Shown piece after piece: positions 19,167 through 54,900 of a stretch of 64,000 nucleotides of DNA. This DNA is from Paragordius varius (Eukaryota > Animalia > Nematomorpha), in assembly GCA_964247055.1 (NCBI GenBank), contig OZ176050.1, positions 15,004,001 through 15,068,000 of the forward strand. Direction: 5' to 3'. The notes beneath the pieces were generated by a model. The model saw only the letters and a list, made by a program, of their open reading frames with translations. It searched no databases and was not told the DNA's origin. The translations under genes were made by a program, and so were the position numbers. Numbering within the stretch: the stretch's first letter is position 1; each line of letters opens with the position of its first letter.

Positions 19167-19801
19167 TTATAATATGATTATAATAATAAATGCGCTCTCT
19201 CAGTCAACAAAAATACATCGGGCCCACAAAACAAAAACCCTCATATTATCGATATATTTTATTTTTCCTTTTTACGTTTTTTTTATAAATTTAATTATAG
19301 ATTTCTTTTTTTCCGAAAATTAGCAGTATCAAAAATATAATGTGTAATATTTTTTGACGACTTTTTTATGTTTTGTTTTAGAAAATTATTTTGTTTAATA
19401 TGAGTATGTTTATATGCAATCATAGTTAATTATTAATAATATATTATTATGTTATGAGATGAAAAAATAAATAAATTTATGTTACTTTAATCGTTCTTAA
19501 TCCTCTTTGAATATGAAATTACACCTAATTTTTTAGACATATATATATAATATAAATTGGTTTTAAATGTTAAAAATTATTATTATATTAACTTTGTAAT
19601 ATCAAATAATTTACTTTTAAGTTTTTTTTGTCAATCATTATTTTTGCTATTTAAAAAATTGCACCGATATAGTTTTAATTGCTTAATGCCATAAAACAAT
19701 ATTCCTTAAATAAATCTATAAAAATATCTTTATAAATAACATTAAAATGGATTCCATGTTGAAATCATTTATTTACAATTAACATAAAATAAAAAAAATC
19801 A

Positions 19802-22576
19802 TTATAATTTGACATGTTTAAGTATGGTTTGTAATTTATCCCTACTAACGTAAGCACAATATATGGATGAAAGACCCAATCCAACCAAACTTCCCATAAA
19901 AATCTTCCTAGGACCAGCTATATAATATAATATACAGTAAAAAAATATAAAGACTTTAAGGTTTTTAATGTTTACATTTTGTGCAAATTATAGTTATTAG
20001 TTAAAAATCCTACGTTGACATCAATTTTTTCGTTTTCATGAAAATTAATTGGAATTTTAACAATTATAAGGAAAAAAACTAACTAAAATCTAATTTATAT
20101 ATATAGTAAAACTTGAAATTATACGGACAAATATGTAGAAATATAAAGACAAATATTTTTTTTATTCCAAAGGACAGCCCCATACTTTTTTTCAAAACTT
20201 GATTTTTCCCATATAATATTTATTTAATTACAACTGTAAAATATATAATTGATTGTGTTACCAATACTCATTTATGTTTCACATGCAATTAAAAGGAATC
20301 AAGTTTATAAAAGTAGAGCAGTCGTTTAAAATATATATTCCATTTACAATTCAAATTCACCCTAAAAATAATATTAATATAAAAAGTATCTTTATGGCAT
20401 AGTTTCTAATTCTTGAGTACTTTAATTTAAAACAAAATTTTATTTTTTTTAAATATATGAATATATATAATTTTCAATCTTAAAATATGTATAATTTATT
20501 TGAGGGTGAATTTGAATTGTAAATGGTATATTTGTCTTTATATTTTTATGTGTCCGTATAATATCATTTTTTACTGACCAATTTACATCTCTGTTCCCTT
20601 ATATATATATAATATATGTCTTTAAAAATATTTGTCTTTTAACATTTAAAAATTGTTTATTTTTATTATTAATCTTTATAAAAAAAAACTTTTTTCCTAC
20701 CCAATTAAAAATATGTTCATTGTGATAAATAAATTTTTAACTAAGGCACACATATTTTTACATAATAAAATTTTAAGTTAAATTTAAAATTTTTAACCTG
20801 TGCATTTATAAAGAGCTCCAGTTAGGGTAGCTGAAGCCAGGGTATTTAACTCATCGTCAGAACCGCGGACCCAAGAAAATAAAACGCCAAAACTGCTATA
20901 CATCAAGGCTAATATTACGTATAAAAAACTTTAAGATTTTTATACAAGATTTTTTTTAATTTAATGAAAATATCTGTTGATATAGCAACTTTTTACTCAT
21001 AAAAAGTGGTATATTTAACGATTTAATAATATTTTAAAAATTTAGATTCTAATACTTAAATAGCTAAAATCCATATATATATATATATATATATATATCA
21101 TAAAAAACTTTTTACACCAAACAAATATAAATAAAACTGAGAAAAATTTTAAATTACCGACAACCCCTAAAACATTAGCAGTTCCAGCACCTTGACGCGT
21201 CACATAATTCAACAGTCTATTGTAATAAAAAATTAAAAATATAGTAAAAATTGATTGAAATTATACGGACAAACATAAAAATAGGATAATATTTCTTTCT
21301 TTATGATAAAGACACACTCATACTTTACAAAAAAAACTAATGAGTAATTACAAAATAGCGAATTATTTAACAATTTACACATCAACCCTATCACTTATTT
21401 TATTTTTATGAATGTTAAAATATTTTAAAAACCAAATTTATTTAATTTAATTTTATTTACTTATCATTTTGGATTGCGATATGTATAAAAGAAACGCACG
21501 CAATTCGGAAAAACACACTCAACTACGGTGAAAATTGAAATTATATACGGACAAAACGTAAAAATATATAAAAAATATTTTTTTGTAAAAGACAACTAAA
21601 TCTTTATATATTTAAATATAACTCAGTTAAAATAGCTACGTATATTGATAACACAATAAATCATGTATTTCACAATGTAATTAAATAATATTTTAATGAG
21701 AATTTTGGTTTAAAAATAAATGGGGTTGGTTGTCTTTAAAAAAAAAATATTTGCCTTTATATATTTACAACGTATAATTCTAAATATTATAGAATTATCC
21801 AGATGAGAAAATAATTTCTTTTAATTTTATATTTTGTCCGTATAATTTCATTTTTTACTGTTAGTTTATTATAAATTTTGAAATATTATACTGTGTTCTT
21901 TGAATACTGCCTTTCATCCCAGTCAATTGAGTTTGTCGCAAACCTGTATAAAGTCCATTTATTCCACCCAAAGCACTGCCTAAAAAACATATTTTTTTAT
22001 AAATTTTTTTAAAAAAGAGATTTTTTTTATATCAGAGGTTTAAATAACATTTTGAAAAAACAAGATCACAAAACTAATAAGAAAACATTAATTTTTTGAC
22101 AGTTTTAAAACTAGTTCAGTTTCTAATTTACATTACTTTGTATGAATTAGATAAAAGGTGATGTTAATCAATTTTTACGTCTCCAAAAAAAATCATCTTA
22201 ATATTTTAATATTTACAGAAATACAGCAAAATAGATTGTTAAAAGTTAAGAAGATTAATTTCAATCTTTTAAAAAACATTTATAACACCTTAAATTAAAA
22301 TTTAAGATAAATAGCAAGAGTAAAAATAACTTATTATTGTACTAACAAACCAATTTGTAAACCTAATATAACGGAAGAACCGATTTGTGAAAATGCCAAT
22401 TCAAATCGTCCGCGTTGTTTATTCGCCCCTTCTGGCATAATAAATTCAGGTTCATGCTAAATTTTATAATTTTTTCATACTTTATATAGCAAAGCTGGAT
22501 CAAAATTGAGGTATGGTGACATCATTGTATACCCAGGCCTACTGTTTTTCGGATATTCCTCACTCATGTCGGGCAT
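19802..22576 (-). CDS. TIMM23: Mitochondrial inner membrane translocase subunit Tim23, 6 exons, 184-187 aa
   Basis: Exons (minus): 22576 or 22567-22481, 22456-22363, 21979-21892, 21216-21158, 20908-20798, 19917-19802. Translation includes SPYLNFDPALLYK|HEPEFIMPEGANKQRGRFELAFSQIG, ALGGINGLYTGLRQT, LLNYVTRQGAGTANVLG, RGSDDELNTLASATLTGALYKCT, colinear with Tim23 as I recall it. The ORF track misses it because every exon is short. Confidence 0.96.
20104..20576. mobile_element. MITE family A copy with a family B element nested in its right TIR (about 20337-20530)
   Basis: A left arm and core, then B (ccatttacaattcaaattcacccta...gggtgaatttgaattgtaaatggta), then the remaining A right arm tttgtctttatatttttatgtgtccgtataat...ttactg. 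Confidence 0.75.
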
Positions 22577-22611
22577 ACGAGATGGTTTAATGAATGTAAA
22601 ATAATAAAAGC
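22577..22611. promoter_or_regulatory. Inferred bidirectional promoter core between the TIM23 and CNOT11 start codons
   Basis: Only 35 bp (44 bp if TIM23 starts at 22567) separate two divergent, conserved housekeeping CDSs. Inferred from geometry only; no motif is claimed. Confidence 0.6.
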
Positions 22612-25600
22612 ATGTCTCTATCTCAAGCTGAAGTGAATTCTATCCTAAAGTATGAAAAAATTTATATTTAATTTTTCAGTTTATTAGCCGAGGATTATGT
22701 GGAAAATCACACGTTTGAGAATATGGCTACCTCGTTTCACCATTACTTTCAGAAAGTTGATCATTTCAAAATTGGTTCTATGCTGGTAATTTTTAAATAT
22801 TAATCGATTTTATTATCTAAAATTTCCTTTTTTGATTCTTAAATTTAGGTTATACTATTGCAACAACATGATTTAATACCTTATGCAAGTCAACGCCTTG
22901 TTTGCATATTTTTACTTTATGAAATGTACAAAGACCAACCTGTTGAATTTAATCCATTTGCCACTGTTTTTTACGTTTTATTGGTAATTTTATAGTAGTT
23001 TTATATTGTTATTACCGGAAATTTTTTATCGAAAATTTAGTTTTTTTTCAATGTGTAAAATTGTCAAACTAACATATACCGTTGTTATCTTTACAATTAT
23101 TTTATTAAATGATCTTAAAAGCTATGATGAATATTAAAAAATTTAAAGCCAATTTATTGTTGTGTTTTGTACTAAAAATAAATTTATTAAGTAAAAAAAC
23201 ATTTCTGAAATCTTTAAACCGCAAAAAAATTTAAGTAATAAAAATAAAACTAAAGAAACTAGATTTTTTTAAAAAAATGAAAACCAACCATTTCTGATCC
23301 TTCATATTTTTACCATAACTAACTGTTTTATGATTTTGAATCGAGATTTGAGAATACACTACATTTATTTTAATCATTTAGGTTCTATAAGATACATATG
23401 ATTTACTTAAAAAATCATCTTTTAATTTTATCATTTATTTGCTTTATATATACAGTGTGCATTTTAATGGTTGCTTATTTCACTATAGTAGGGGAATTTG
23501 CAACGCTACAAGAGTGTATAGAAAAAACGAAAGAGTATATAATTGTTTATTCAACATTTGGTTGTTTTTTTCCATACACTACTGTGTTGCAAATCTACTA
23601 TAGTGTGAAATAAGCAACCATTAAAATGCATACGTATATATATATATATATATATGACATTTAAATTCCCTATATGATGTATATGTGATAGACAACATCA
23701 GATGAGAATTCCAACAATAAAAATAAAGCGCGTTTAGATTTTGGTGGAACAATTCCCAAAATTACAAATGCAGAAAAATATTTTTTAGCTATGGTCCTTT
23801 CGGGAAACGGGTCTGAAGTAAGTTTTTACTTTTACTTTAATTTTTTACTTGTTCTCTTTAAATTGCGCATAAACTGTATATTAGTATGTGTTGTATTATA
23901 TATATATATATATATATATATGAATATATACATGTTAAAAGGGTTAATATTTAGTATTTTTAACTCTAAAAACTGTCTTTTTGTCGTTATATGTTGCCTA
24001 AAAAAATGAACAAATATATATATATTCTAGTTTGTTGATAAAAATCTTCTTTTTAATCTATATTATCAATAATAGAATTGTTTGCCATTAAAAAAATCCA
24101 TTAAAAAATATTTTTATCGGGTTAATAAAAAACAATAGTATTCTTGATTTTCATAATTTTATAATCATTTTTATTTTTGCATTAAAAATTGAAATTATAC
24201 TATGGACAAAACGTAAAAACATAAAGACAAATATTTCGTATTAAAATAAAACTAACCATACTTTTTAAAACCTTATTTTTTTCATATAAAATGAATTATA
24301 TCATAACAAACCTAGAATATTTAATTAATTTTGCTACCAATATACATTTTCATTTCATATTACTTGGCGATTTAAAACATATAGTTGTATCGCTAAAAAA
24401 ATCAAGGAGGGAAAAAATTATGGTTAGTTGTCTTTCTTTTGAAAAAAAACGAAATATTTGCCATTCTTTACCTTTATTTTTTTGTATAAATTCATTTTTT
24501 ATGAATATTATTTTGAATGTCAGTTATTGAAAAAAACACCAAATCAACTCATAAACTGTGATGCTACGATGAATTTCAACAGTATTGAACAAATCCCTCC
24601 ACAAACCATGTCAAACTTATTGGATTCCTTGGCTAAACTGTGGAATCAATTACCGATAACTGCAAAATCAGGACTTTCCTGTATAATTGCTGACCCTGAT
24701 TTGAGATCTAGGTGGTTTTTTTTACACATTTGTCTTGAAATAGTTTTTTTTCGAAAAAAAAATTGATGAGTTTTTGTTGGAAATTTTTAAATTATATATG
24801 ATTTGAAAAAGATTATTTTTTAGGATATTTTTTTTATAAAATAAAGAGGAAATATAATAGCTGTATTTTAAGATTAGTTTTTACCCGCTAATTATTCTAA
24901 GCTTAACTTTTGTATATACAATAAAAACTGAAATTATACTATGGACAAAACTTAAAAATGTAAGGACAAATATTTTTTTTAAAAGACAACTACCATACTT
25001 TTTAATCAATTATTTTTTTAATATAACTCATTGCATAACAGTATAAGTAAGTTATACATTGCTAGAAAATTATTAATTATTGCCAATTAGTAAATACAGC
25101 ATAGAGTATTATTGGCTAAAATAAATTTAAGCCAATAATACTGCCCTTTGTATAAGATATGGTATTTGACAATAATCAATAACTTTCTAGCAATATATAC
25201 TTACTCATACTGTATAATGTAAAGAATTGGTAACACAATCAATTACATACATTTTACAATGATTGTAATTTATTAATTTATATATCAAAGGAATAAAACT
25301 ATTTCAAAAAAAGATTTTTTGTCTTTTATTTTAAACAAAAAAGTTTTTACGGTAAAACTTATTTGCAGCAATAATTATCATTCTTTTTTTCTAAATATTT
25401 TTTTTCCAGCTTATGCTTAGATTCAGGATTTTCCTCACCTTCTTTATGTGGTGGTCTAGTTCCTCCGACCCCAACAAGCGTTACTAATCCATTGTTGTTT
25501 GGGAATAATTCTGCATTGCAAAATAGTAATTTTTAAGCGATTTTTTGAAATATTTTTAACTTACTAAGTTTTTAGTAAAATTATAAAATAGAGAGTTATA

Positions 25601-38967: not shown

Positions 38968-41900
38968 TCAAAATAGCTTAAATGTTTCATTAGTGACTTT
39001 GTCAGGTGTTATTTCAGGGACATGGTTGGCCATATACGGAACGGATATACGGGCCCCACCTATAACCACTATTTGACAATCATCACAAGAATCCAATGAA
39101 TAAAATATGGTCTCAGGAATGGGCGCCATATTATCCATATGCTCGACACGGTTAAAATAAATGCCAAAGTGTGCCAAACCGTTTGTAATATCCGATACGC
39201 GCCATTCAAGCACAGGTAATTCATGTGTGGAAAGGAAACGGGTAATATCAAAATTTGGTTCATTAATAACTTTAGATAAGGGTTGACTTTCATTTGAAGA
39301 AACTCTTATACGTTCGTCAAAATCATTGATTGCCCTTACTAAGGGTTTTAAATCCAAATAGAATGGATATAAAGAATTTTTACGTTTCTTATTTGCGAGT
39401 GTTAGGTGGTAAGGTGTATTATGTGTTTCAATCTTTACTTGTTCATCATATGACATTTGGCTTTCGGTAGTACCTTTAGGCCCTTTGTCAGTGCTGTGAT
39501 TTATGATGTTAGCTGGCTGGTTTTCAGAACCTCTCGTGTCGCAATCACAATAAGCACACATTTTAAATGCCTCCAACACGGATGATAAATGAGATGGTTC
39601 TTGGATCGCACTACAGTTTGCTATATCGTTACCAGTTAGAGGCAGATCAACATAGGGACCAATGTCGTTATCTAAAACATTCATATCATCGTTTGCATCA
39701 AATCCGATAAAATTATGGCTAATATTTGAATGTGCAGGTGACGCATGATGTGAATTATATTCTCTGGACAAAAGATGTTGTTTCATTCGTTCGATCCTGG
39801 TTAATCGGTTTCGGTTAATTCGCTCCTGATCTTGAGGAGAAAGTTTACAGAGTCTACCATGACGAGGCATTGCCTCGGAAGAAACCACAGTAGATGAAAT
39901 GGAAGGAGTGGTAACCTTACAAAAATGTTTGTTCGAAGTTGAAGGCCTTTCCAAATCTAAAAAGTGTGGTGATTTATTTAGACCGTTATTTTCGTTTGAC
40001 TTATCTGGCACCAAAACTGGCAATTGATGTGCAGGGGTCACGTTTGTTTCTTCATCCGTTGACAAATTTATTTCCATGTTATCTGAAATTGGCAGATTTT
40101 GGACCGGATCAAAATTAATACTGGGATGAAATAAATCCGAAAATGGCCTCCGAGAATAGGAATCATGATCACTTTCAGAACTGGTGTGCATAGGATGCTG
40201 GTAGGCTTGTAACATACCTTGTAACTGCCTATGTTCCCGCACACTATTTAAATGGGCATTAAATTGTTGAGTCCTAAGATTTAATAGATCAATAATTGAT
40301 CCCCTATTGCTAGTATTTCGATTGTTACTAAGGAGCTGTGAATTTTTATACGGGGCAAGTACAACAAGCATTTGTTGTGTGTGAAGATACGTGGCGGATC
40401 TAGCCCATAAATTAGATGGCCACGCTTCACTCCAACAAGTGCTTGAAGTCTTGCCACCGGAAAACGTATCATTCTCATCCTCAATAAACTCGCTCTTAAT
40501 GTCCTCATTATGGGTTGTATTGCTGTTACTTGTGCTTGTGTTATTGTTAGCTTGAAATTGTGAAGCATTCTGAGCCGCTGCATTCATACACGACCTATTG
40601 AGACGGCATGAACGGGCCAATGATGTAAAAATATTTTTCGTTTTTATTTCAACCCAATACCATGGTAATCGTATATTTGGCCCAGATGAAGGTTGTTGAG
40701 ATGAAGCAGGATTTCCATTCAATGGTTCCCGGAAAAAGAAGCCACCCGTTCTAAGAATCCAAGCGTCATGATATTTATAACCAGATGTAGAAATACCCCC
40801 TATAATAAGCCAATCACCACTTTCCCGCAAAGGAGCATGGGAATGATTAAATCGAGACGTTGGCCCCGTCTCTGTGAAGGGAATCGTCATAAGCCTTTGA
40901 TGATGTTCTGTGTTGCCATCCAATGATCGACTGCCATCTTCATGTGATGATATTGGGGATACATTGGGCGAAGAAAATAAATTAACTGCCCGAGTATGAG
41001 AGTTAGCTAGTCTAACATTATGATCTATAGGTGCTGGTGACCATGACATTTGTTGGAAATCAAACACCCACAAGGCGTTGGAAGAGTAAGGACCGGGTGA
41101 ACATAGGCCCCCAAATACTAACATGAAAAGACCCTTTTTACATTTCACGGGTTGAGCCGCTAAATTAGATGATACATTTGTAGTAGCATCTAATGGGCTT
41201 GATAAGGGAAAGTAAGCGTTTTTATCACGCAAAGAATCCCAAGAAGAATCAATCAACGACTCTTTCAGATGATTTGCATGAGAGTTTTCGTTATAGTTAA
41301 GCTCAAAGATAGCTGCGGTATGACCTGCTGTAGCGGGAGGATGTAAAAATGAGGCCCTTAAATCGGAATAATCTATATCATCGGGTGTAACTCCGCTAAT
41401 GTCTGTATTAGCTACCAATCTGGTATTATACATATTCCGGTATGATTTGTATTCCGTGTTATCGGAAAGCATTTGAGAATTTTTTTGGAAGTTAGCTAAC
41501 GGATCTATCTTGGACCATTTATTTGTGACAATATCAAACATATGCAATGTATTAAGCATACGTGGCAATTCAAACAGCGAAGATGCCAAAGCGTGACCCC
41601 CAAACAAGACAAGTTTATCCATGTTATAGGGTAGGGCAACTAAGGTAGCGGATGATCTAGGGCAAGGGATATCGTTACTATTCCTTGAATACTTGTGATC
41701 ATTGGAAAGCGATACGTTAGAATTATAAATAATTTTGGTCCATTCCATAGTCAATACATTAAGTTTCCATAAATCATTTAACTTGGAGGATGGTTCGGGT
41801 TGACCACCGAAAACGTATATGTGACCTTTGTGATAACAAGTGGCATGTTTATACCTGGGAGTAAAAATATTGGTGGATTTAGATACAACGGGATGGTTAG

Positions 41901-42252
41901 GTAGTTCATTTACAATGTAATGCGAATGAGATAAAAATGTAGGATCATATAATAGGTTCACTCCAACTGGTACACTTAATGTCCGATAATAATGACAAAA
42001 ACATTTGCAAAACTTTTGAAAATCTTTGTTATGCAATTTATGGGGATAATATTTTTTAATTAAACAGCTCCCATGATAAAATGAATTTTCAAAATCTTTC
42101 TGCTTAATTTGGAGTGCATTATAAGAAATGGCTTTCCATCTCGCACAAATGGTTGATGCAATATATTTAAGTGTAAATGAATCAACTTTAGATAAAATGT
42201 ATAACAAAATTTCATCGGGAATATCACAAAATCCCAACTCCGTGCAAGACAT
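38968..42252 (-). CDS. FBXO42: F-box/Kelch-repeat protein (FBXO42-like), single exon, 1094 aa
   Basis: Uninterrupted ORF. N-terminal F-box (IPDEILLYILSKV...ICARWK), Kelch repeats (PRYKHATC..HIYVFGG..LNDLWKL, PCPRSSATL..LVLFGGH, MLVFGG, RFNHSH..LIIGG) and a C-terminal LEWRV...PETIFYSL..IVVIGG block, arranged as I recall FBXO42. Confidence 0.85.
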   Translation of the reverse strand: MSCTELGFCDIPDEILLYILSKVDSFTLKYIASTICARWKAISYNALQIKQKDFENSFYHGSCLIKKYYPHKLHNKDFQKFCKCFCHYYRTLSVPVGVNLLYDPTFLSHSHYIVNELPNHPVVSKSTNIFTPRYKHATCYHKGHIYVFGGQPEPSSKLNDLWKLNVLTMEWTKIIYNSNVSLSNDHKYSRNSNDIPCPRSSATLVALPYNMDKLVLFGGHALASSLFELPRMLNTLHMFDIVTNKWSKIDPLANFQKNSQMLSDNTEYKSYRNMYNTRLVANTDISGVTPDDIDYSDLRASFLHPPATAGHTAAIFELNYNENSHANHLKESLIDSSWDSLRDKNAYFPLSSPLDATTNVSSNLAAQPVKCKKGLFMLVFGGLCSPGPYSSNALWVFDFQQMSWSPAPIDHNVRLANSHTRAVNLFSSPNVSPISSHEDGSRSLDGNTEHHQRLMTIPFTETGPTSRFNHSHAPLRESGDWLIIGGISTSGYKYHDAWILRTGGFFFREPLNGNPASSQQPSSGPNIRLPWYWVEIKTKNIFTSLARSCRLNRSCMNAAAQNASQFQANNNTSTSNSNTTHNEDIKSEFIEDENDTFSGGKTSSTCWSEAWPSNLWARSATYLHTQQMLVVLAPYKNSQLLSNNRNTSNRGSIIDLLNLRTQQFNAHLNSVREHRQLQGMLQAYQHPMHTSSESDHDSYSRRPFSDLFHPSINFDPVQNLPISDNMEINLSTDEETNVTPAHQLPVLVPDKSNENNGLNKSPHFLDLERPSTSNKHFCKVTTPSISSTVVSSEAMPRHGRLCKLSPQDQERINRNRLTRIERMKQHLLSREYNSHHASPAHSNISHNFIGFDANDDMNVLDNDIGPYVDLPLTGNDIANCSAIQEPSHLSSVLEAFKMCAYCDCDTRGSENQPANIINHSTDKGPKGTTESQMSYDEQVKIETHNTPYHLTLANKKRKNSLYPFYLDLKPLVRAINDFDERIRVSSNESQPLSKVINEPNFDITRFLSTHELPVLEWRVSDITNGLAHFGIYFNRVEHMDNMAPIPETIFYSLDSCDDCQIVVIGGARISVPYMANHVPEITPDKVTNETFKLF

Positions 42253-46921: not shown

Positions 46922-49900
46922 ATGCTCAGATATTTAATTTACGGTTTAGTTTTGAAATTGTCCATTTTGGCAGCACGCGAAAACTATGATTTATGCGTTA
47001 ATAAAAAAATAAAGATTAAAGTTTAAAATTTTTATATTGAAGAATGCTGTTTGTACTTTATGTAATGTAACACAAATTAATCGGTCTTTAATCAACCCGA
47101 ATTTTGAAATTAATATCAAGACATATCGCTGGATGACCCAAATTGATGAACAAAATTACCAAAATTATATCGGAATTAATATAAGCTGGACAATAAATAA
47201 TTTGGTTACGAAGTAAATTATTATATAGAAATTAGGGATGTTCAATTTGCGGTATATAATGTTTTAAATGATCCAAAAATGAACCTATTTTCACCAAAAA
47301 CAATACAATGTAATGATTTAATTAAGTTAGAGGTATGATACGCATTTAATAAAATTAGAATCTATATTATGATTGCCTTTTTATGTTTCCTAATACACAA
47401 CCTCTTATACTCTATATTGAATCTTACATATCTTATCATTACTTTAGTCAGAAATATGTATCTCTGCCCAGTATAAATGACATCTTAAGTTTAATTTTTA
47501 ATATTAATTGGTTTTTATAGCTTTTCATAGTTGGAAACCAACCCTAACCTATACTTTTTCCCATTCAACAAACCCTAATCAAAATTTATCAGTTGATTTA
47601 GACATTTCTCTTATTGTGGGACATGTACAAACGCCCCCTAAATTTTTACATACTAAATTTTTTGGTTCAATCCAAATTGTATTATGGGTACTACTAAATG
47701 CATCAACGTTTGAAACTCTATCCTATGGTCAATTACTTTTTAGTTTGCATGATACATCTAAAGCCTCTCAACTTTGGCCTGTATCTGTTAAACTAATCAA
47801 AGCGGTAAGTTTTCTTTTAGCTTTTTTATCTATAATTTGTCTTTAAATTATCCTACATTGTTGCCTAATTTAGACGGAACCAGATAGTCTTGAGAAATTT
47901 GTATTCACCTTTCAAGATCTATTTAACCCTTACATCGTGGACCAGTTAATTCACAATAAGCTCAATTCTTTATCACCAGTGTATGCCAATGACTCGTTTG
48001 GTAAATTATCGGAAAATTTTTCAAACGCATTTTCTACACGACCTAGCCCACAAAGTATTTTAGCTTTAAGGTCGTTGTATTTAAACAGCTCTACCATTTT
48101 TTTCATGACGGCCCATAAAATGCCACAGTCTCAAAATGAGCTTAATCAAAAGTCGAAGGAAACCAAAAAATGTTTAAACAATTATTGGAATGCGGCGGGA
48201 GATTGGACACCTTGGTTCACGTGCACATTTAATTTGTCGGATAATGGTACCATAACTTCTGTGGTCGGTAGTATACCTGCAATTATGTCGCTAGGCTTTC
48301 ATTTCGCTTATATGGCAAAATATTATCCTTTTACTATGGGCCAAAACAACCAAGCCTTTTTAACACACTATTTTTCCCTCTTTAATATGCAACAAAAAAG
48401 ATTTGAAGGAAAGGCTGTCTTATTTCTTATTGTTTTATCCGTACTTTTTACGCTGGTTTTAGCGAGTTGCGTTGTGTTTGGGTATTACCGTAAAATCTAC
48501 TCCAAAAAGATATGGAACGGATGTTCTGATACAAATGTAAGTTCTGAAAATGTAAATCGACATAATTATGAAACACCTCTACTAGAATCAAAAGCTAAAC
48601 CGCCGAATGTTTTAGTTTTATATCCACCATTTCTTAAAGAATCTTTAACTATGGGCGTGGAATTGATTGAAACGTTTTGTGACATTTTCCAAACGCATTT
48701 TGACTGCAAAGTACATTTGGATTTGTGGAACTTATTAGAGGTAGTAGACCCTTTTTAAAATTTTTAAAACGTTGATTAAATATCTTAAATTAGGAATATA
48801 TCATTAAGTCAAAAGGAACATTTTTTCAAGCAAACGCGACATTTTTATTCAAACGCAGCATTTTTTCGATTTTCTGGATTAAAAAATTGTTGTCTCTTTT
48901 AAAAAATTTGCGTTTGCATGAAAAAATTTTGTGTTTTCTTGAAAAAAATGTAAAGCTATTATGATATTTTTTTTAAAAAAGTTTTATTTTATAACTTAGA
49001 ATAAGTCTTCGCATCCACTTTTTTGGTTACAAGAATCTATATCCAATTCACAAGTTGTGATTTACCTTATCCCAGCATGTAAAATTGGGGACATTGAAAA
49101 AAAGGCCAAAATTAGACAGGAACTTTTTATTTTCAAGGATTATATGATGCGTTTGGCGTCTCAGGGAAAACTACCAACTATCATAAAACATAAATTATGG
49201 TCAAATTTGTTTAATGCCTCCCTTCGTCTCATAATATCGCAACAATTAACATCACAAGAAAATGAATACCGCAGTAAAGGCGACCACCTACAAATCATAT
49301 TTATCATCCTAGGTTTCCAAAATATTATTGCCGATGAAATGCCAAACGAATCTTGTTGTGTAGAAAGTAATTACATAATAAATTATTTCAAACTACTTAA
49401 AGGGCTCTGCCCAAGCTCCAAATTAATTTTGGTTGGTGAACCACAAAAACAAGCGAATTCCAGCTATATGAATCCCATTTTTTATCATTTATCAAGCGTT
49501 TTGCCAGTAAAGATAAAGGGCGAAAACATAGTTGACGAGACTAAGGATAAGCATAAAAGCTTTACAACACTCTTAACTAGGTTTAATTGGCTCTTTAACA
49601 ATATAAATATGGACACACAAGATAGACCAATAGAGGAATCCATCTTTCCAACAAACAATATAACAGGAACTGAAAATCTAGAGCTTATAAATTTAACAGA
49701 TATAGACCGTAAAATTGACAATTCCTTCCTGTATGATTTCAATTCAAGCCTGCTAACACTAAATGATGTACCCTTGTTTGAAACAATGTTGGGCAACGTG
49801 CCAGATAATACAGAAAAAACGACAGATATATCAGTTCAAAAGGGCAGTTTTAGGGCAATTGATAATAGTCAATACTTGGATATTGGTGAACACCTAAACT

Positions 49901-50099: not shown

Positions 50100-51595
50100 A
50101 TGGGGAATATCTTTACACAAGTAAATTTTTTCGTTTTTTAAGCCAATATTATTATAATTAACTCATCATTGTCTATATCATATCATAACATATTTGCAGG
50201 AAAATGTGGAAGAAAAATTCGAAATTATACTACGCAATCATAGGGTGGCCTTCGAATCCAAATGGAATTCGCATGAAAAAGGTGCGTATAGCAAATGCGA
50301 TGATTTCATTTACATTAGGCGTTTGGGGGAGGGCGGATTTGGTAAAGTCCTCCTGGGAAAGTGTAAAAGAACCAAAAAGTTTTTTGCCATAAAACTCATG
50401 TTAAAACGCGACTTGGTAGATAAACGACAAGTCAAACAAGCCTTCAATGAACGCAAAATTTTGTTTTGCAATGATTTCCGTTTCCTCATGTCACTCCACA
50501 GTTTTGCCAAAGATTATTCCACCCTTTATCTCGTGATGGAGTTTATGGATGGTGGGGAACTCTATGCCTACCTCAAACGCATGAAACGTTTTAGCGAACC
50601 GCTAGGCCGCTTTTATGCGGCACAAGTCATTCTTGGCATCAAATATCTCCATACGATGGATCTCACTTACCGTGATATGAAACCCGAAAATTTGCTGTTG
50701 GACATTCGCGGTTACCTCAAGATTGGTGATTTTGGCTTTGCTAAGAAGGTTAAAAACAAAACTTGGACTTTTTGTGGAACACCTGATTACATGGCACCCG
50801 AAGTTATCTTGAGTCTCGGTATGAATCAAGCTGTCGATTGGTGGGGCATTGGTATCCTGATATTTGAAATGTGCGCCGGCTTTGCACCCTTTGCCGACCC
50901 CCAAGAGGACAATGTATATGCCAAAATATTGGCTGGCCAATACAAAATTCCTTACCATTTTAGTCAACAAGTAGTTGGTAGTTTTTTTGTTTTACACAAT
51001 AGAAATTGGAATTATACGGATAAAACGTAAAAATATAAAGGCAAATATTTTTTTCTCGAAAGACTAACCATACTTTTTTAAGCTTATTTTTTTCTTAAAT
51101 GAACTATTCAATCCTTTTAAAATATATAATTGATTGTTACATACTTTATTTCAAACAATGAATTTCAATTAATCAATCAATTAGGATTAAAAAAGTATGG
51201 TTATCTTTTAGAAAAAAATATTTGTCTTTTAACGTTTTGTCCGTATAATTCCAATTTTTACTGTAATTTTCATGTCGTCAAAAACCATTTTCCAAATGAT
51301 TATTTTTCATATTTAAACGTGTGCGCAGGTAGAAGATTTAATTGAACAATTTCTAAGGGCAAACCCTTCGACTCGATTGGGTATGGGTGCGAATGATACA
51401 CAAAAAATAAGAAGTCATCCCTGGTTTACTAATTTGGATTGGACGCTTATATATGAGAAAAAAATTATATCGGATTTGGTCCCCGATTGTCCGACACGAT
51501 TGCAGTTGGAAAGTAAAAAACAGGCTGACATTCAAAAACATTTGGGCCCTGTGGCGAGCTCTGAGGAATTTCCTGATCTTTTTGCGGATTTTTGA
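50100..51595 (+). CDS. Divergent cAMP-dependent protein kinase catalytic subunit-like AGC kinase, 3 exons
   Basis: Exons: 50100-50120 (MGNIFTQ), 50200-50970, 51329-51595. Motifs GEGGFGKV, FAIK, YRDMKPENLL, DFGFAK, TWTFCGTPDYMAPE, AVDWWGIGILIFEM, HPWF and a terminal FxxF hydrophobic motif (FADF-stop) typical of PKA-C. Confidence 0.9.
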
Positions 51596-51951: not shown

Positions 51952-54900
51952 CTACGATGGAAGTTCAAAGATATGAGGGCATTGACCATAATTCCGTTCC
52001 CAATAGGCATCGTTGAATTGCCAATCAATGTTATCGGAGTCGCGTTTAAAGTTGGGGTTCGGTCCTGAGGCGAACCACAGCGGACCCTTAACTATGTCAC
52101 AAGAACGGAGTTTATCCAAGCTCTGTAACTTGGTGCTGTGATCATTTGGATCAATGCGTAGAGCATTTAACTGTGAGGCTGACATTGATTTTACGGCTTT
52201 TGCTACGGTCCGCTGTTTTTCTTCGAGCGCATTCTTTAGCTTGGAGCTGAGATCAACTTTGCCATTTTCGTATTCCCGCATATCGGGTCGGAACCGAGAA
52301 TCGGTGCAAGGAAACTTTGAGGCATCGGGCGGTAACTCATTGAGTATCATACTGAAGAGTGAGAAGTTAAACATCTATATACAATAAAAATAAATATCGT
52401 TATGGAAATGCAATAATTAAAAAATTATGATAGAAGAGGGAACGAAACAAAAATATGTACAAGATAATTGGGGGTAAGGGATAATAAATGGAATATATTA
52501 AAATAAAAACAAACCATTGATGTTCTTTTTACATTATGATTTTTGAATTTTTCTAATTAGAAACCCAAGGCATGTTGATTTTTTTATTAAGTTTATTTAT
52601 GAATTTAAACTCTTGAACCTGTTTTGAATTGGCAGGTTTTGGCCTATAGTGCCAAAGTAGTTTTGATTGAGGTAGATCTAATACAAATTTTGCGTATTTT
52701 AAATGCTCGATCGTGGGTGGAGGAGATGTATCGTTTACTGGCATAGCACCTTCGGCGTATAACGTCTTTATGTTTAGTCAGAAAAAATATTTTTCACATA
52801 AAATGCAAACAAAAGGCATTTTTTTAAAAAGATAGCCATGCATGAATTCTATTGTTTTAAAATAACTTGTCGTTTTTTGTAATTTAAGGGATACATATGT
52901 AAATTGTTTACATTCATTCAGATAAAAATCAAAGTTATATAGTTTATGTGGGATATAACAAGGTTTTACAAAAGTATAGTTGTCTTTTTTAAAAAAATTT
53001 CCCTCTTTTAGTCATAATATTTCGTCTTTATAATTTCATTATATATCATTATAAAAATAAATGAAAAATAATACTTGGTAGGAATAAGCCTTTTTTGACA
53101 GCTAAAATATATTGATAAAAAGTATAGTTATAGATAAGTATAATGAGATTAAGGTAATATTTAATAGGGCTTACACTGCTACTCCGTCTCCGTAACATTT
53201 TATCCGTAACACTTTTACTGAGTGAATTTTCATAATTTTTGGGGGTAGTTGAGTACAGGGCTAGATTCCAATGCCCGTATAAGGCTCTAACTTTTGTATT
53301 CCTATATATACATTTAGATTTGTTAATCCATCTTATGAAATATTATATTCTCATTTAAAACTTTTAAGAATTTTGGGATCAATTAGTAAGTTCGATTCCG
53401 TATTGGTTGGTCGTCTCAAAATAAACAGTTAGAATCAAAATTTTTAAATGGAAAAATTAAAAGTTAATTGTTTTGATTCAGGTTTTGAAAAAGAGTTTTT
53501 GATACCTTTGATCTAAAATGAATCCATCGACGCGATTAACTTCTTTGCCAAACATACCCGCTGGTCGAAAATTGATAGAACAAGAATATCCATTAGTGTG
53601 GTTTTTGATATCTAGTGTACCAGTCTGTGGTATTGTTAAATTTAAAACAACTTTTGACTACAACATATTTCTATCTGGATTCATTAAATATACCATTTAC
53701 AATTCAAATTCACCCTTGAACAATTCAAATTACCCCTAAAAATAAATTATGTTTTCGGGCTAATATAACTCATCATTAATATGAAATATATTTTTACGAC
53801 ATAGTTTATTATTTTTTCAGCATTGTATTAATTTTAAACAATATTATATATTTTCAAAATATTAAAAATTAAAGCAACATATTAGGGTGAATTTGAATTG
53901 TTCAAGGGTGAATTTGAGGTGTAAATGATATAACAGTTGAAAAATGCTCCTTTGATTTTTAGGATAATCCAAACAAGTTTTATGTTATATTTTAAAAAGG
54001 TGGTGGCTTGAAAAAATAAGTTAATATAAAAACCAATGGTATATTTAATTTTATCCTATGAAAAATCTTTATTCAATGTCTGGATATACCAATGATGTTT
54101 AAAATAAATTGGAAATTTAAATTTTTGAAAAAAAAATTAGTTTAAAATTGATCAAAGCTTATAATTTTACATGTTCTATCCACAGTTTTCCCATTATAAT
54201 GTTGTGTATCGTGCAGTTTGGGTTAGTCCATGTATAACATTCATTGTGACTATGCATAAAATATGACAATAAAAATATTTCATTAAAGATCCTGAACGGG
54301 AGATTTTTTGAAAATTATATACAGTAAAATTAATATTATGCAGAAAAAACGAAATAACTTAAGGAAAGAATATCATTTTTGAAAATTAAACCAAGCTATT
54401 TAAAACCATAAACTTTTAATTACAATTTTAAAATTATGAAATGTAATGTACTTTTTTCCTATTTTATCATGATCGTATTTGAAAAATATTTGTCTTATAA
54501 TTTTTAAATTTTGTCCTTTATAAACAAAATTATGTAAAGAAATTCTAAGATAGTCACAGAAAAAACTTGAATACTTTTAATTTTAATATAAAAAATTCCA
54601 ACACTATTTTCCTTTTTATAAAACAATTTTTACTGCAAAATTTTATGAAAATTCAAAAAAATTACTTTTTAAGGTAGAGACTGATAACACCAATGGGTGT
54701 TACATCTAAAGCTTTCCCCCAAAACTTGCTTTTGGGATGGATGGAACCATGAAATTTGTACAGTTTTGATTCGGCATGGAAGGCACTGATGGGTGGGTGA
54801 TGAGACACCTGTTCACAAACCATACTGTAACCAGCTTCGGGCCTAAAAAAATTTTTTTGTTGCATATTTACAGTAAAAATTGAAATTATGCAGACAGAAC

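Follow-up and report, generated by a model that had tools for sequence, protein, structure and literature searches.

Background

Can a stretch of only 24 nucleotides serve as a spliceosomal intron in an animal gene? The question is raised by a locus of the hairworm Paragordius varius, where such a segment interrupts the 5' part of a gene for the mitochondrial import protein Tim23. Animal introns of less than about 30 nt were long thought to be absent, and in a survey of 51 metazoan genomes introns below 30 bp were found only in the Myxobolidae (median 27 bp in Henneguya salminicola, 22 bp in Thelohanellus and Myxobolus) and in Dicyema japonicum, with more lineages predicted (Hadjez et al. 2026, PMC13644364). 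Nematomorphs are unmentioned in the text of PMC13644364, the word 'intron' is absent from the Gordionus genome paper, and no paper on nematomorph intron sizes was found in the literature searched. We examined the TIM23 locus for the identity of the gene, the exactness of the junction, the history of the intron and the signals by which it may be spliced. The window, i.e. the whole stretch of DNA that was analysed, measures 64,000 nt, and positions are those of the window unless a contig is named.

Methods

The exons of TIM23 were searched one by one and were joined only to obtain codon positions and to check for an open frame. For the junction profile, the full-length Tim23 of Gordionus was used to gather 120 orthologues, which were then aligned; the Gordionus protein model P0001, which runs on into its own fourth intron, was set aside. 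All GT..AG pairs of 10-150 nt between the TIM23 ATG and the end of exon 2 were enumerated (n = 28). Orthologous introns were placed by mapping annotated proteins onto their own genomic loci. Natural variation was read from contigs of another DNA sample that carries the same species label; its runs X4 and X5 come from one sample and are not independent of each other.

Identity and structure of the TIM23 gene

TIM23 lies on the minus strand and consists of six exons with a total of 555 nt, giving 184 codons with a single, terminal stop. The features of the gene are as follows (all minus strand).

TIM23 exon 1: 22567-22481, minus strand, 29 codons, MSEEY...SPYLNFDPALLYK
TIM23 intron 1: 22480-22457, minus strand, predicted 24-nt GT-AG micro-intron, phase 0
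TIM23 exon 2: 22456-22363, minus strand, HEPEFIMPEGANKQRGRFELAFSQIGSSVIL plus the first base of a split Gly codon
TIM23 intron 2: 22362-21980, minus strand, 383 nt (Gordionus counterpart about 50 nt)
TIM23 exon 3: 21979-21892, minus strand
TIM23 intron 3: 21891-21217, minus strand, 675 nt, contains high-copy repeats
TIM23 exon 4: 21216-21158, minus strand
TIM23 intron 4: 21157-20909, minus strand, 249 nt
TIM23 exon 5: 20908-20798, minus strand, Tim17-family core
TIM23 intron 5: 20797-19918, minus strand, 880 nt, contains high-copy repeats
TIM23 exon 6: 19917-19802, minus strand, ends in a TAA stop

Searched singly, two exons gave colinear matches to the family model TIGR00983 (tim23), exon 2 to its positions 15-43 (E 0.003) and exon 5 to 95-129 (E 2.5e-6); exon 5 also matched PF02466 (Tim17 family, E 3e-6). 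Exon 2 alone as a query returned 75 Tim23 proteins and fragments, headed by Gordionus sp. m RMFG-2023, to whose Tim23 exon 2 is 93% identical; compared exon by exon, the identity to the Gordionus protein is 71%. The gene that holds the 24-nt segment is, by its predicted product, Tim23. Exons 1 and 2 had no match among PDB sequences, an Rfam scan of the 64-kb window returned no match, and no Tim23 derived from transcripts of this species turned up in the protein collections when these were word-searched with the Gordionus protein.

The gene is single-copy. The only other TIGR00983 match in the 110.6-Mb assembly is Tim17, the DNA of exon 1 and exon 2 is present once, and no second copy or retrocopy of TIM23 that lacks the intron was found in the assembly. 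An in-frame ATG also occurs upstream at 22576-22574 and reads AAA in the other haplotypes described below; the start codon is therefore likely to be the ATG at 22567. At the intron 5 acceptor (19916-19918), one contig of run X1 carries two 1-nt deletions and two nearby substitutions, which may represent a second haplotype or a misalignment near the end of the contig.

The 24-nt segment and its junction

Read on the minus strand, 22480-22457 is gtatgaaaaaattataaaatttag, a segment of 24 nt that begins with GT and ends with AG. Its GC content is 12.5%, against 38-39% in the flanking exons and about 24% in the whole window. The reading frame before the segment ends in ...SPYLNFDPALLYK / ...MMSPYLNFDPALLYK and the frame after it starts with HEPEFIMPEGANKQRGRFELAF. 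With the segment retained, the frame continues as V*KNYKI* (asterisks denote stops), in which TGA is the second codon and the TAG of the acceptor is the last, both in frame.

The position of the junction can be read from the protein. Residues 4-28 of exon 1 align to positions 20-44 of the 120-orthologue profile and residues 2-30 of exon 2 to positions 47-75; therefore, K29 and H1 occupy neighbouring positions, 45 and 46. The six exons follow one another colinearly and without gaps over profile positions 20-197. The SPYL and RGRFE motifs lie 27 residues apart in our model. Of 118 orthologues, 89 have this same distance, within a range of 25-29, and it would become 35 residues with the 24 nt kept in. 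The six-frame match to TIGR00983 extends into the translated intron and is uninformative on the junction.

Splicing might nevertheless use some other junction or first exon, and the enumeration supplies candidates for it, as the frame stays open in five of the 28 GT..AG pairs. However, the four pairs other than 22480..22457 remove 29-37 codons, including SPYLNFDP and/or EFIMPEG, while the profile puts both exon ends on adjacent positions. A single pair among the 28, namely 22480..22457, leaves the conserved motifs and the orthologue spacing intact, and we consider the use of another junction or first exon to be extremely unlikely. Judged by its letters and by the protein that they would encode, the 24-nt GT-AG pattern at 22480-22457 exceeds chance.

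The initial annotation had proposed this minus-strand segment at 22457-22480, with a GTA TGA stop on retention, on the grounds that its removal joins LLYK to HEPEF without a gap and that protein conservation fixes both ends. The segment and its in-frame stops were confirmed on re-reading, the gap-free join agrees with the adjacency of the exon ends in the profile, and the anchoring of both ends is borne out by that adjacency together with the enumeration and the orthologue spacing.

The same intron in other animals

The initial annotation had also suggested an alignment of Tim23 orthologues as a means of learning whether the intron position is ancestral. Mapping of annotated proteins gave a positive answer, with a phase-0 intron at the same boundary in four further animals (the slash marks the intron).

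Gordionus sp. m RMFG-2023 (CAK9297061.1 / XP_065315885.1): LLYK/NEPEF, 40 nt, phase 0
Ornithodoros (tick): AFINA/GGPEW, 137 nt, phase 0
Liolophura (chiton): AYITP/AGEPEF, 151 nt, phase 0
Lineus (nemertean): AYISP/SPGSEF, 344 nt, phase 0

The intron starts five residues past SPYLNFDP in all four species, and the remaining four intron positions of TIM23 described here are also common to them. In the sand fly TIM23, the intron at this boundary has been lost. Since the codon boundary and the phase are the same in four animals, the 24-nt segment would be a shrunken ancient intron and not a new insertion; with introns of 137-344 nt at the exact spot in tick, chiton and nemertean, it would thus be a well-anchored animal intron of less than 30 bases.

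Gordionus, the closest of the matches to exon 2, shares the boundary LLYK/(N or H)EPEF, the phase and a head-to-head arrangement of TIM23 with CNOT11. Its intron differs in being 40 nt long, and its sequence has no detectable similarity to that of the 24-nt intron. The TIM23 introns of Gordionus are mostly 40-118 nt in length, with one of 10.4 kb in addition. The shared intron positions, the gene arrangement and the Tim23 identity put the genome within the gordiid hairworms or close to them.

Natural length alleles

Contigs of the second sample cover 22437-22572 as two haplotypes. The intron of the first is gtattaaaaattataaaatttag, brought to 23 nt by a 1-nt deletion and with G replaced by T at +5, and that of the second is gtatcaaaaatttataatttag, brought to 22 nt by a 2-nt deletion, with an A-to-T change and with G replaced by C at +5; in all, two substitutions and one indel within 24 nt were counted for each variant allele. 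The GT, the TTATAA motif and the TTTAG are common to all three alleles (24, 23 and 22 nt). Retention of the 23-nt or the 22-nt version shifts the frame. Depending on the allele, the unspliced frame meets a stop at codon 31, 68 or 38, and once the segment is removed the frame is open through exon 2 in all of them.

Over the whole gene, the haplotypes show 15 exonic differences, of which 14 are synonymous and one is S9T; within exon 1, the synonymous share is three of four. In these alleles, the segment evolves as non-coding DNA, with indels that do not come in threes and with faster change than the exons, and TIM23 is under strong purifying selection. The second sample may belong to a cryptic sister species and not to the same population, which does not weaken the comparative argument.

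The conservation of exon 1 bears on a reading in which nothing is removed. An in-frame ATG is present in exon 2, so that the protein could start at an internal Met (MPEGANK...) and exon 1 would then be a short upstream ORF. Against this, exon 1 encodes the conserved SPYLNxDP at the exact spacing of the orthologues, most of its few haplotype differences are synonymous, as given above, and the orthologues of four other animals splice at the same boundary. An internal start is accordingly very unlikely, and removal of the segment remains the preferred reading.

The segment was found in all four DNA runs examined. Contigs of run X1, which is likely to be the source sample, cover it with no difference reported, and this argues against an assembly artefact. 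The in-frame stops would suit a pseudogene, or a spurious insertion of 24 nt in the assembly; yet the independent sample holds 22- and 23-nt versions of the segment, the gene is single-copy with the selective constraint described above, and all other exon junctions are intact. A pseudogene or artefact is already close to excluded, and we give it next to no weight beside a functional TIM23 with a short intron.

None of the listed runs that contain the locus is recorded as RNA, and X4 and X5, in which about the exon share of the sampled words is present, proved to be DNA of a divergent sample. Among the same-species runs, those marked 'RNA?' contained next to none of the sampled words of the locus. 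Run X3 (organism B) yielded low-depth contigs (2-6x) identical to the locus over 19700-22750, though it is labelled as a different organism; the identity suggests that the two are connected through a host, through prey or by contamination, and not that organism B is a diverged relative.

Splice signals and mechanism

Taken together, it is highly probable that 22480-22457 is a genuine U2-dependent GT-AG spliceosomal first intron of the single-copy TIM23 gene, and that it represents an ancestral phase-0 intron shrunk to 22-24 nt. We infer from the conservation of the protein and of the intron position that the segment is excised, and the mechanism is most likely canonical U2-type splicing with weak signals.

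The donors of the three alleles are GTATGA, GTATTA and GTATCA, each followed by a run of A. By eye, the donor pairs poorly with canonical U1, at roughly five of nine positions, or four of nine in the other alleles. The candidate signals for the branch and the pyrimidine tract, read from sequence alone, are the shared TTATAA and TTTAG. Neither the RTATCCTT 5' site nor the TCCTTAAC branch motif of U12-type introns is present in TIM23 intron 1, and the U1 snRNA genes of this genome retain the canonical ACUUACCUG 5' end. These U1 genes, together with degraded copies, are clustered, with 16 of 17 matches on contig C6 in the two regions below; one high-scoring copy (L041) has the variant 5' end ACTTACTTGG.

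U1 cluster: G000:C6:565000-634000
U1 cluster: G000:C6:3718000-3734000

In the mechanism that we propose, the ancestral phase-0 intron, still 137-344 nt long in other protostomes and 40 nt in Gordionus, would have been reduced to 22-24 nt in this lineage. Recognition would take place across the intron (intron definition), from a weak 5' site in which only GUAU is constant among the alleles and a nematode-like UUUAG acceptor, and the branch adenosine would probably lie within TTATAA, 6-10 nt from the 3' end. Any transcript left unspliced would run into the premature stop of its allele and be unproductive. The same pattern is reportedly found in Paramecium, where according to Jaillon and colleagues (2008) the unspliced form is said always to meet a premature stop.

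Two routes of removal that do not involve the spliceosome might be considered, namely IRE1-type cleavage and a programmed somatic DNA elimination. The size of the segment fits the former, as unconventional introns of the XBP1/HAC1 type, which are cleaved in the cytoplasm by IRE1, measure 23-26 nt; as to the latter, some relatives of hairworms, the ascarid nematodes, eliminate DNA. However, the ends are GT..AG, the position is orthologous to that of ordinary spliceosomal introns, direct reading of the sequence found no CNGCNGN loop motifs at AAA/GTATGA or TTTAG/CATGAA, and the segment is in every DNA run examined. Removal by either of these routes is scarcely plausible, and canonical splicing remains the favoured mechanism.

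CNOT11 and introns elsewhere in the genome

The neighbour of TIM23 is CNOT11, which is divergent and lies head-to-head with it, with its ATG at 22612 (plus strand) against the TIM23 ATG at 22567 (minus strand). The two start codons are only 44 nt apart (22568-22611), compared with about 560 nt in Gordionus. For the promoters and 5' UTRs this leaves an overlap with the partner gene, extreme shortness or some other source. CNOT11 also begins with a short intron.

CNOT11 first intron: 22650-22679, plus strand, 30-nt GT-AG, gtatgaaaaaatttatatttaatttttcag

This intron opens with GTATGAAAAAAT, as the TIM23 micro-intron does, and its counterpart at this codon position in Gordionus CNOT11 measures 37 nt. 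In both TIM23 and CNOT11, the micro-intron is the first intron. Past the first exons, conservation with Gordionus was too low for the later introns of CNOT11 to be placed.

Introns in general are not miniaturised in this genome: the other introns of TIM23 measure 249-880 nt and hold repeats, and those of the CCT chaperonin genes are mostly long. Inspected by eye, the CCT genes have roughly 50 gaps between colinear matches, mostly of 220-1200 nt, with no gap below 32 nt in the match table; the shortest CCT intron that was resolved is 36 nt, in frame, at about G000:C2:9804720-9804755. Micro-introns are a minority class that is unevenly spread and are not the default of this genome.

Two intervals of the locus, 20108-20617 in intron 5 and 21536-21943 around intron 3, have a summed contig depth 100 to 1000 times that of their flanks in all DNA runs, with many joints to other copies and with motifs such as tccgtataatttcaa. 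The repeats in introns 3 and 5 look like very high-copy MITE-like elements that inflate the long introns.

Several further features were observed in the window, and the Kelch ORF, which has no introns, contrasts with the finely split genes near it.

46997-47520, plus strand: several GTA...TTAG stretches of about 23-26 nt (e.g. gtatgatacgcatttaataaaattag) that resemble the TIM23 micro-intron, candidates by sequence only
38968-42252, minus strand: Kelch-repeat ORF (PF24681, PF13418), 1094 codons in one uninterrupted stretch, within the most GC-rich part of the window
50194-51030, plus strand: long exons of a protein kinase (PF00069, E 1e-59)
51952-52374, minus strand: long exons of an oxysterol-binding protein (PF01237)

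Discussion

Nematodes are the sister phylum of hairworms, and their short introns have a mode of about 47 nt, a UUUUCAG 3' site and no branch consensus. The 3' ends seen here (TTTAG, TTTTTAG and TTTTCAG) are similar to those of nematodes, but the 24-nt intron is about half the nematode minimum.

Closer in size are the introns of the myxobolids, which are likewise parasitic animals with GT-AG introns of less than 30 nt at conserved positions between conserved exons, a 5' signal cut to about GTA, As ahead of the AG and canonical snRNA machinery. In myxobolids, however, such introns are the genome-wide norm in compact genomes, whereas here TIM23 combines the micro-intron with repeat-filled introns of 249-880 nt. 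Dicyema japonicum (Lu et al. 2019, PMC6736024, cited in PMC13644364) similarly has introns below 30 nt at conserved positions, and differs in that the shortening is genome-wide and in being a spiralian and not an ecdysozoan. Ciliate introns reach a similar size, about 25 nt in Paramecium and others and 15-16 nt in Stentor (PMC5014332, PMC9505925), but in unicellular lineages in which all introns are tiny.

On the conservation described above, TIM23 intron 1 would be one strong instance of animal introns of less than 30 nt in a third lineage, one that is ecdysozoan and parasitic. Both of its ends are anchored by conservation, its counterparts in other protostomes are 40-344 nt long, and the alleles of 22, 23 and 24 nt show that its length is not strictly fixed. 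What is unusual with respect to the known cases is that a gene with so tiny an intron also has introns of several hundred bases filled with repeats, and therefore overall compaction of the genome cannot be the cause.

The finding also has a practical side. Genes of this kind would be broken by annotation pipelines that require introns to be at least about 30-40 nt long, and this bears on claims of gene loss in Nematomorpha. A wider proposal, which we put forward tentatively and regard as possible but rather less than likely, is that of a two-class intron system, in which 5'-proximal and often first introns have collapsed to 22-31 nt, near what the spliceosome can physically handle, still differ in length among members of a population and are spliced by canonical U1/U2 with minimal-signal intron definition, and in which part of the gene loss in Nematomorpha is artefactual. 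Such an artefact is possible because introns of this kind are not modelled by gene finders or by BUSCO-type tools. If the proposal is true, an artefact of annotation could lie behind part of the reported 'rampant loss of universal metazoan genes' in Nematomorpha.
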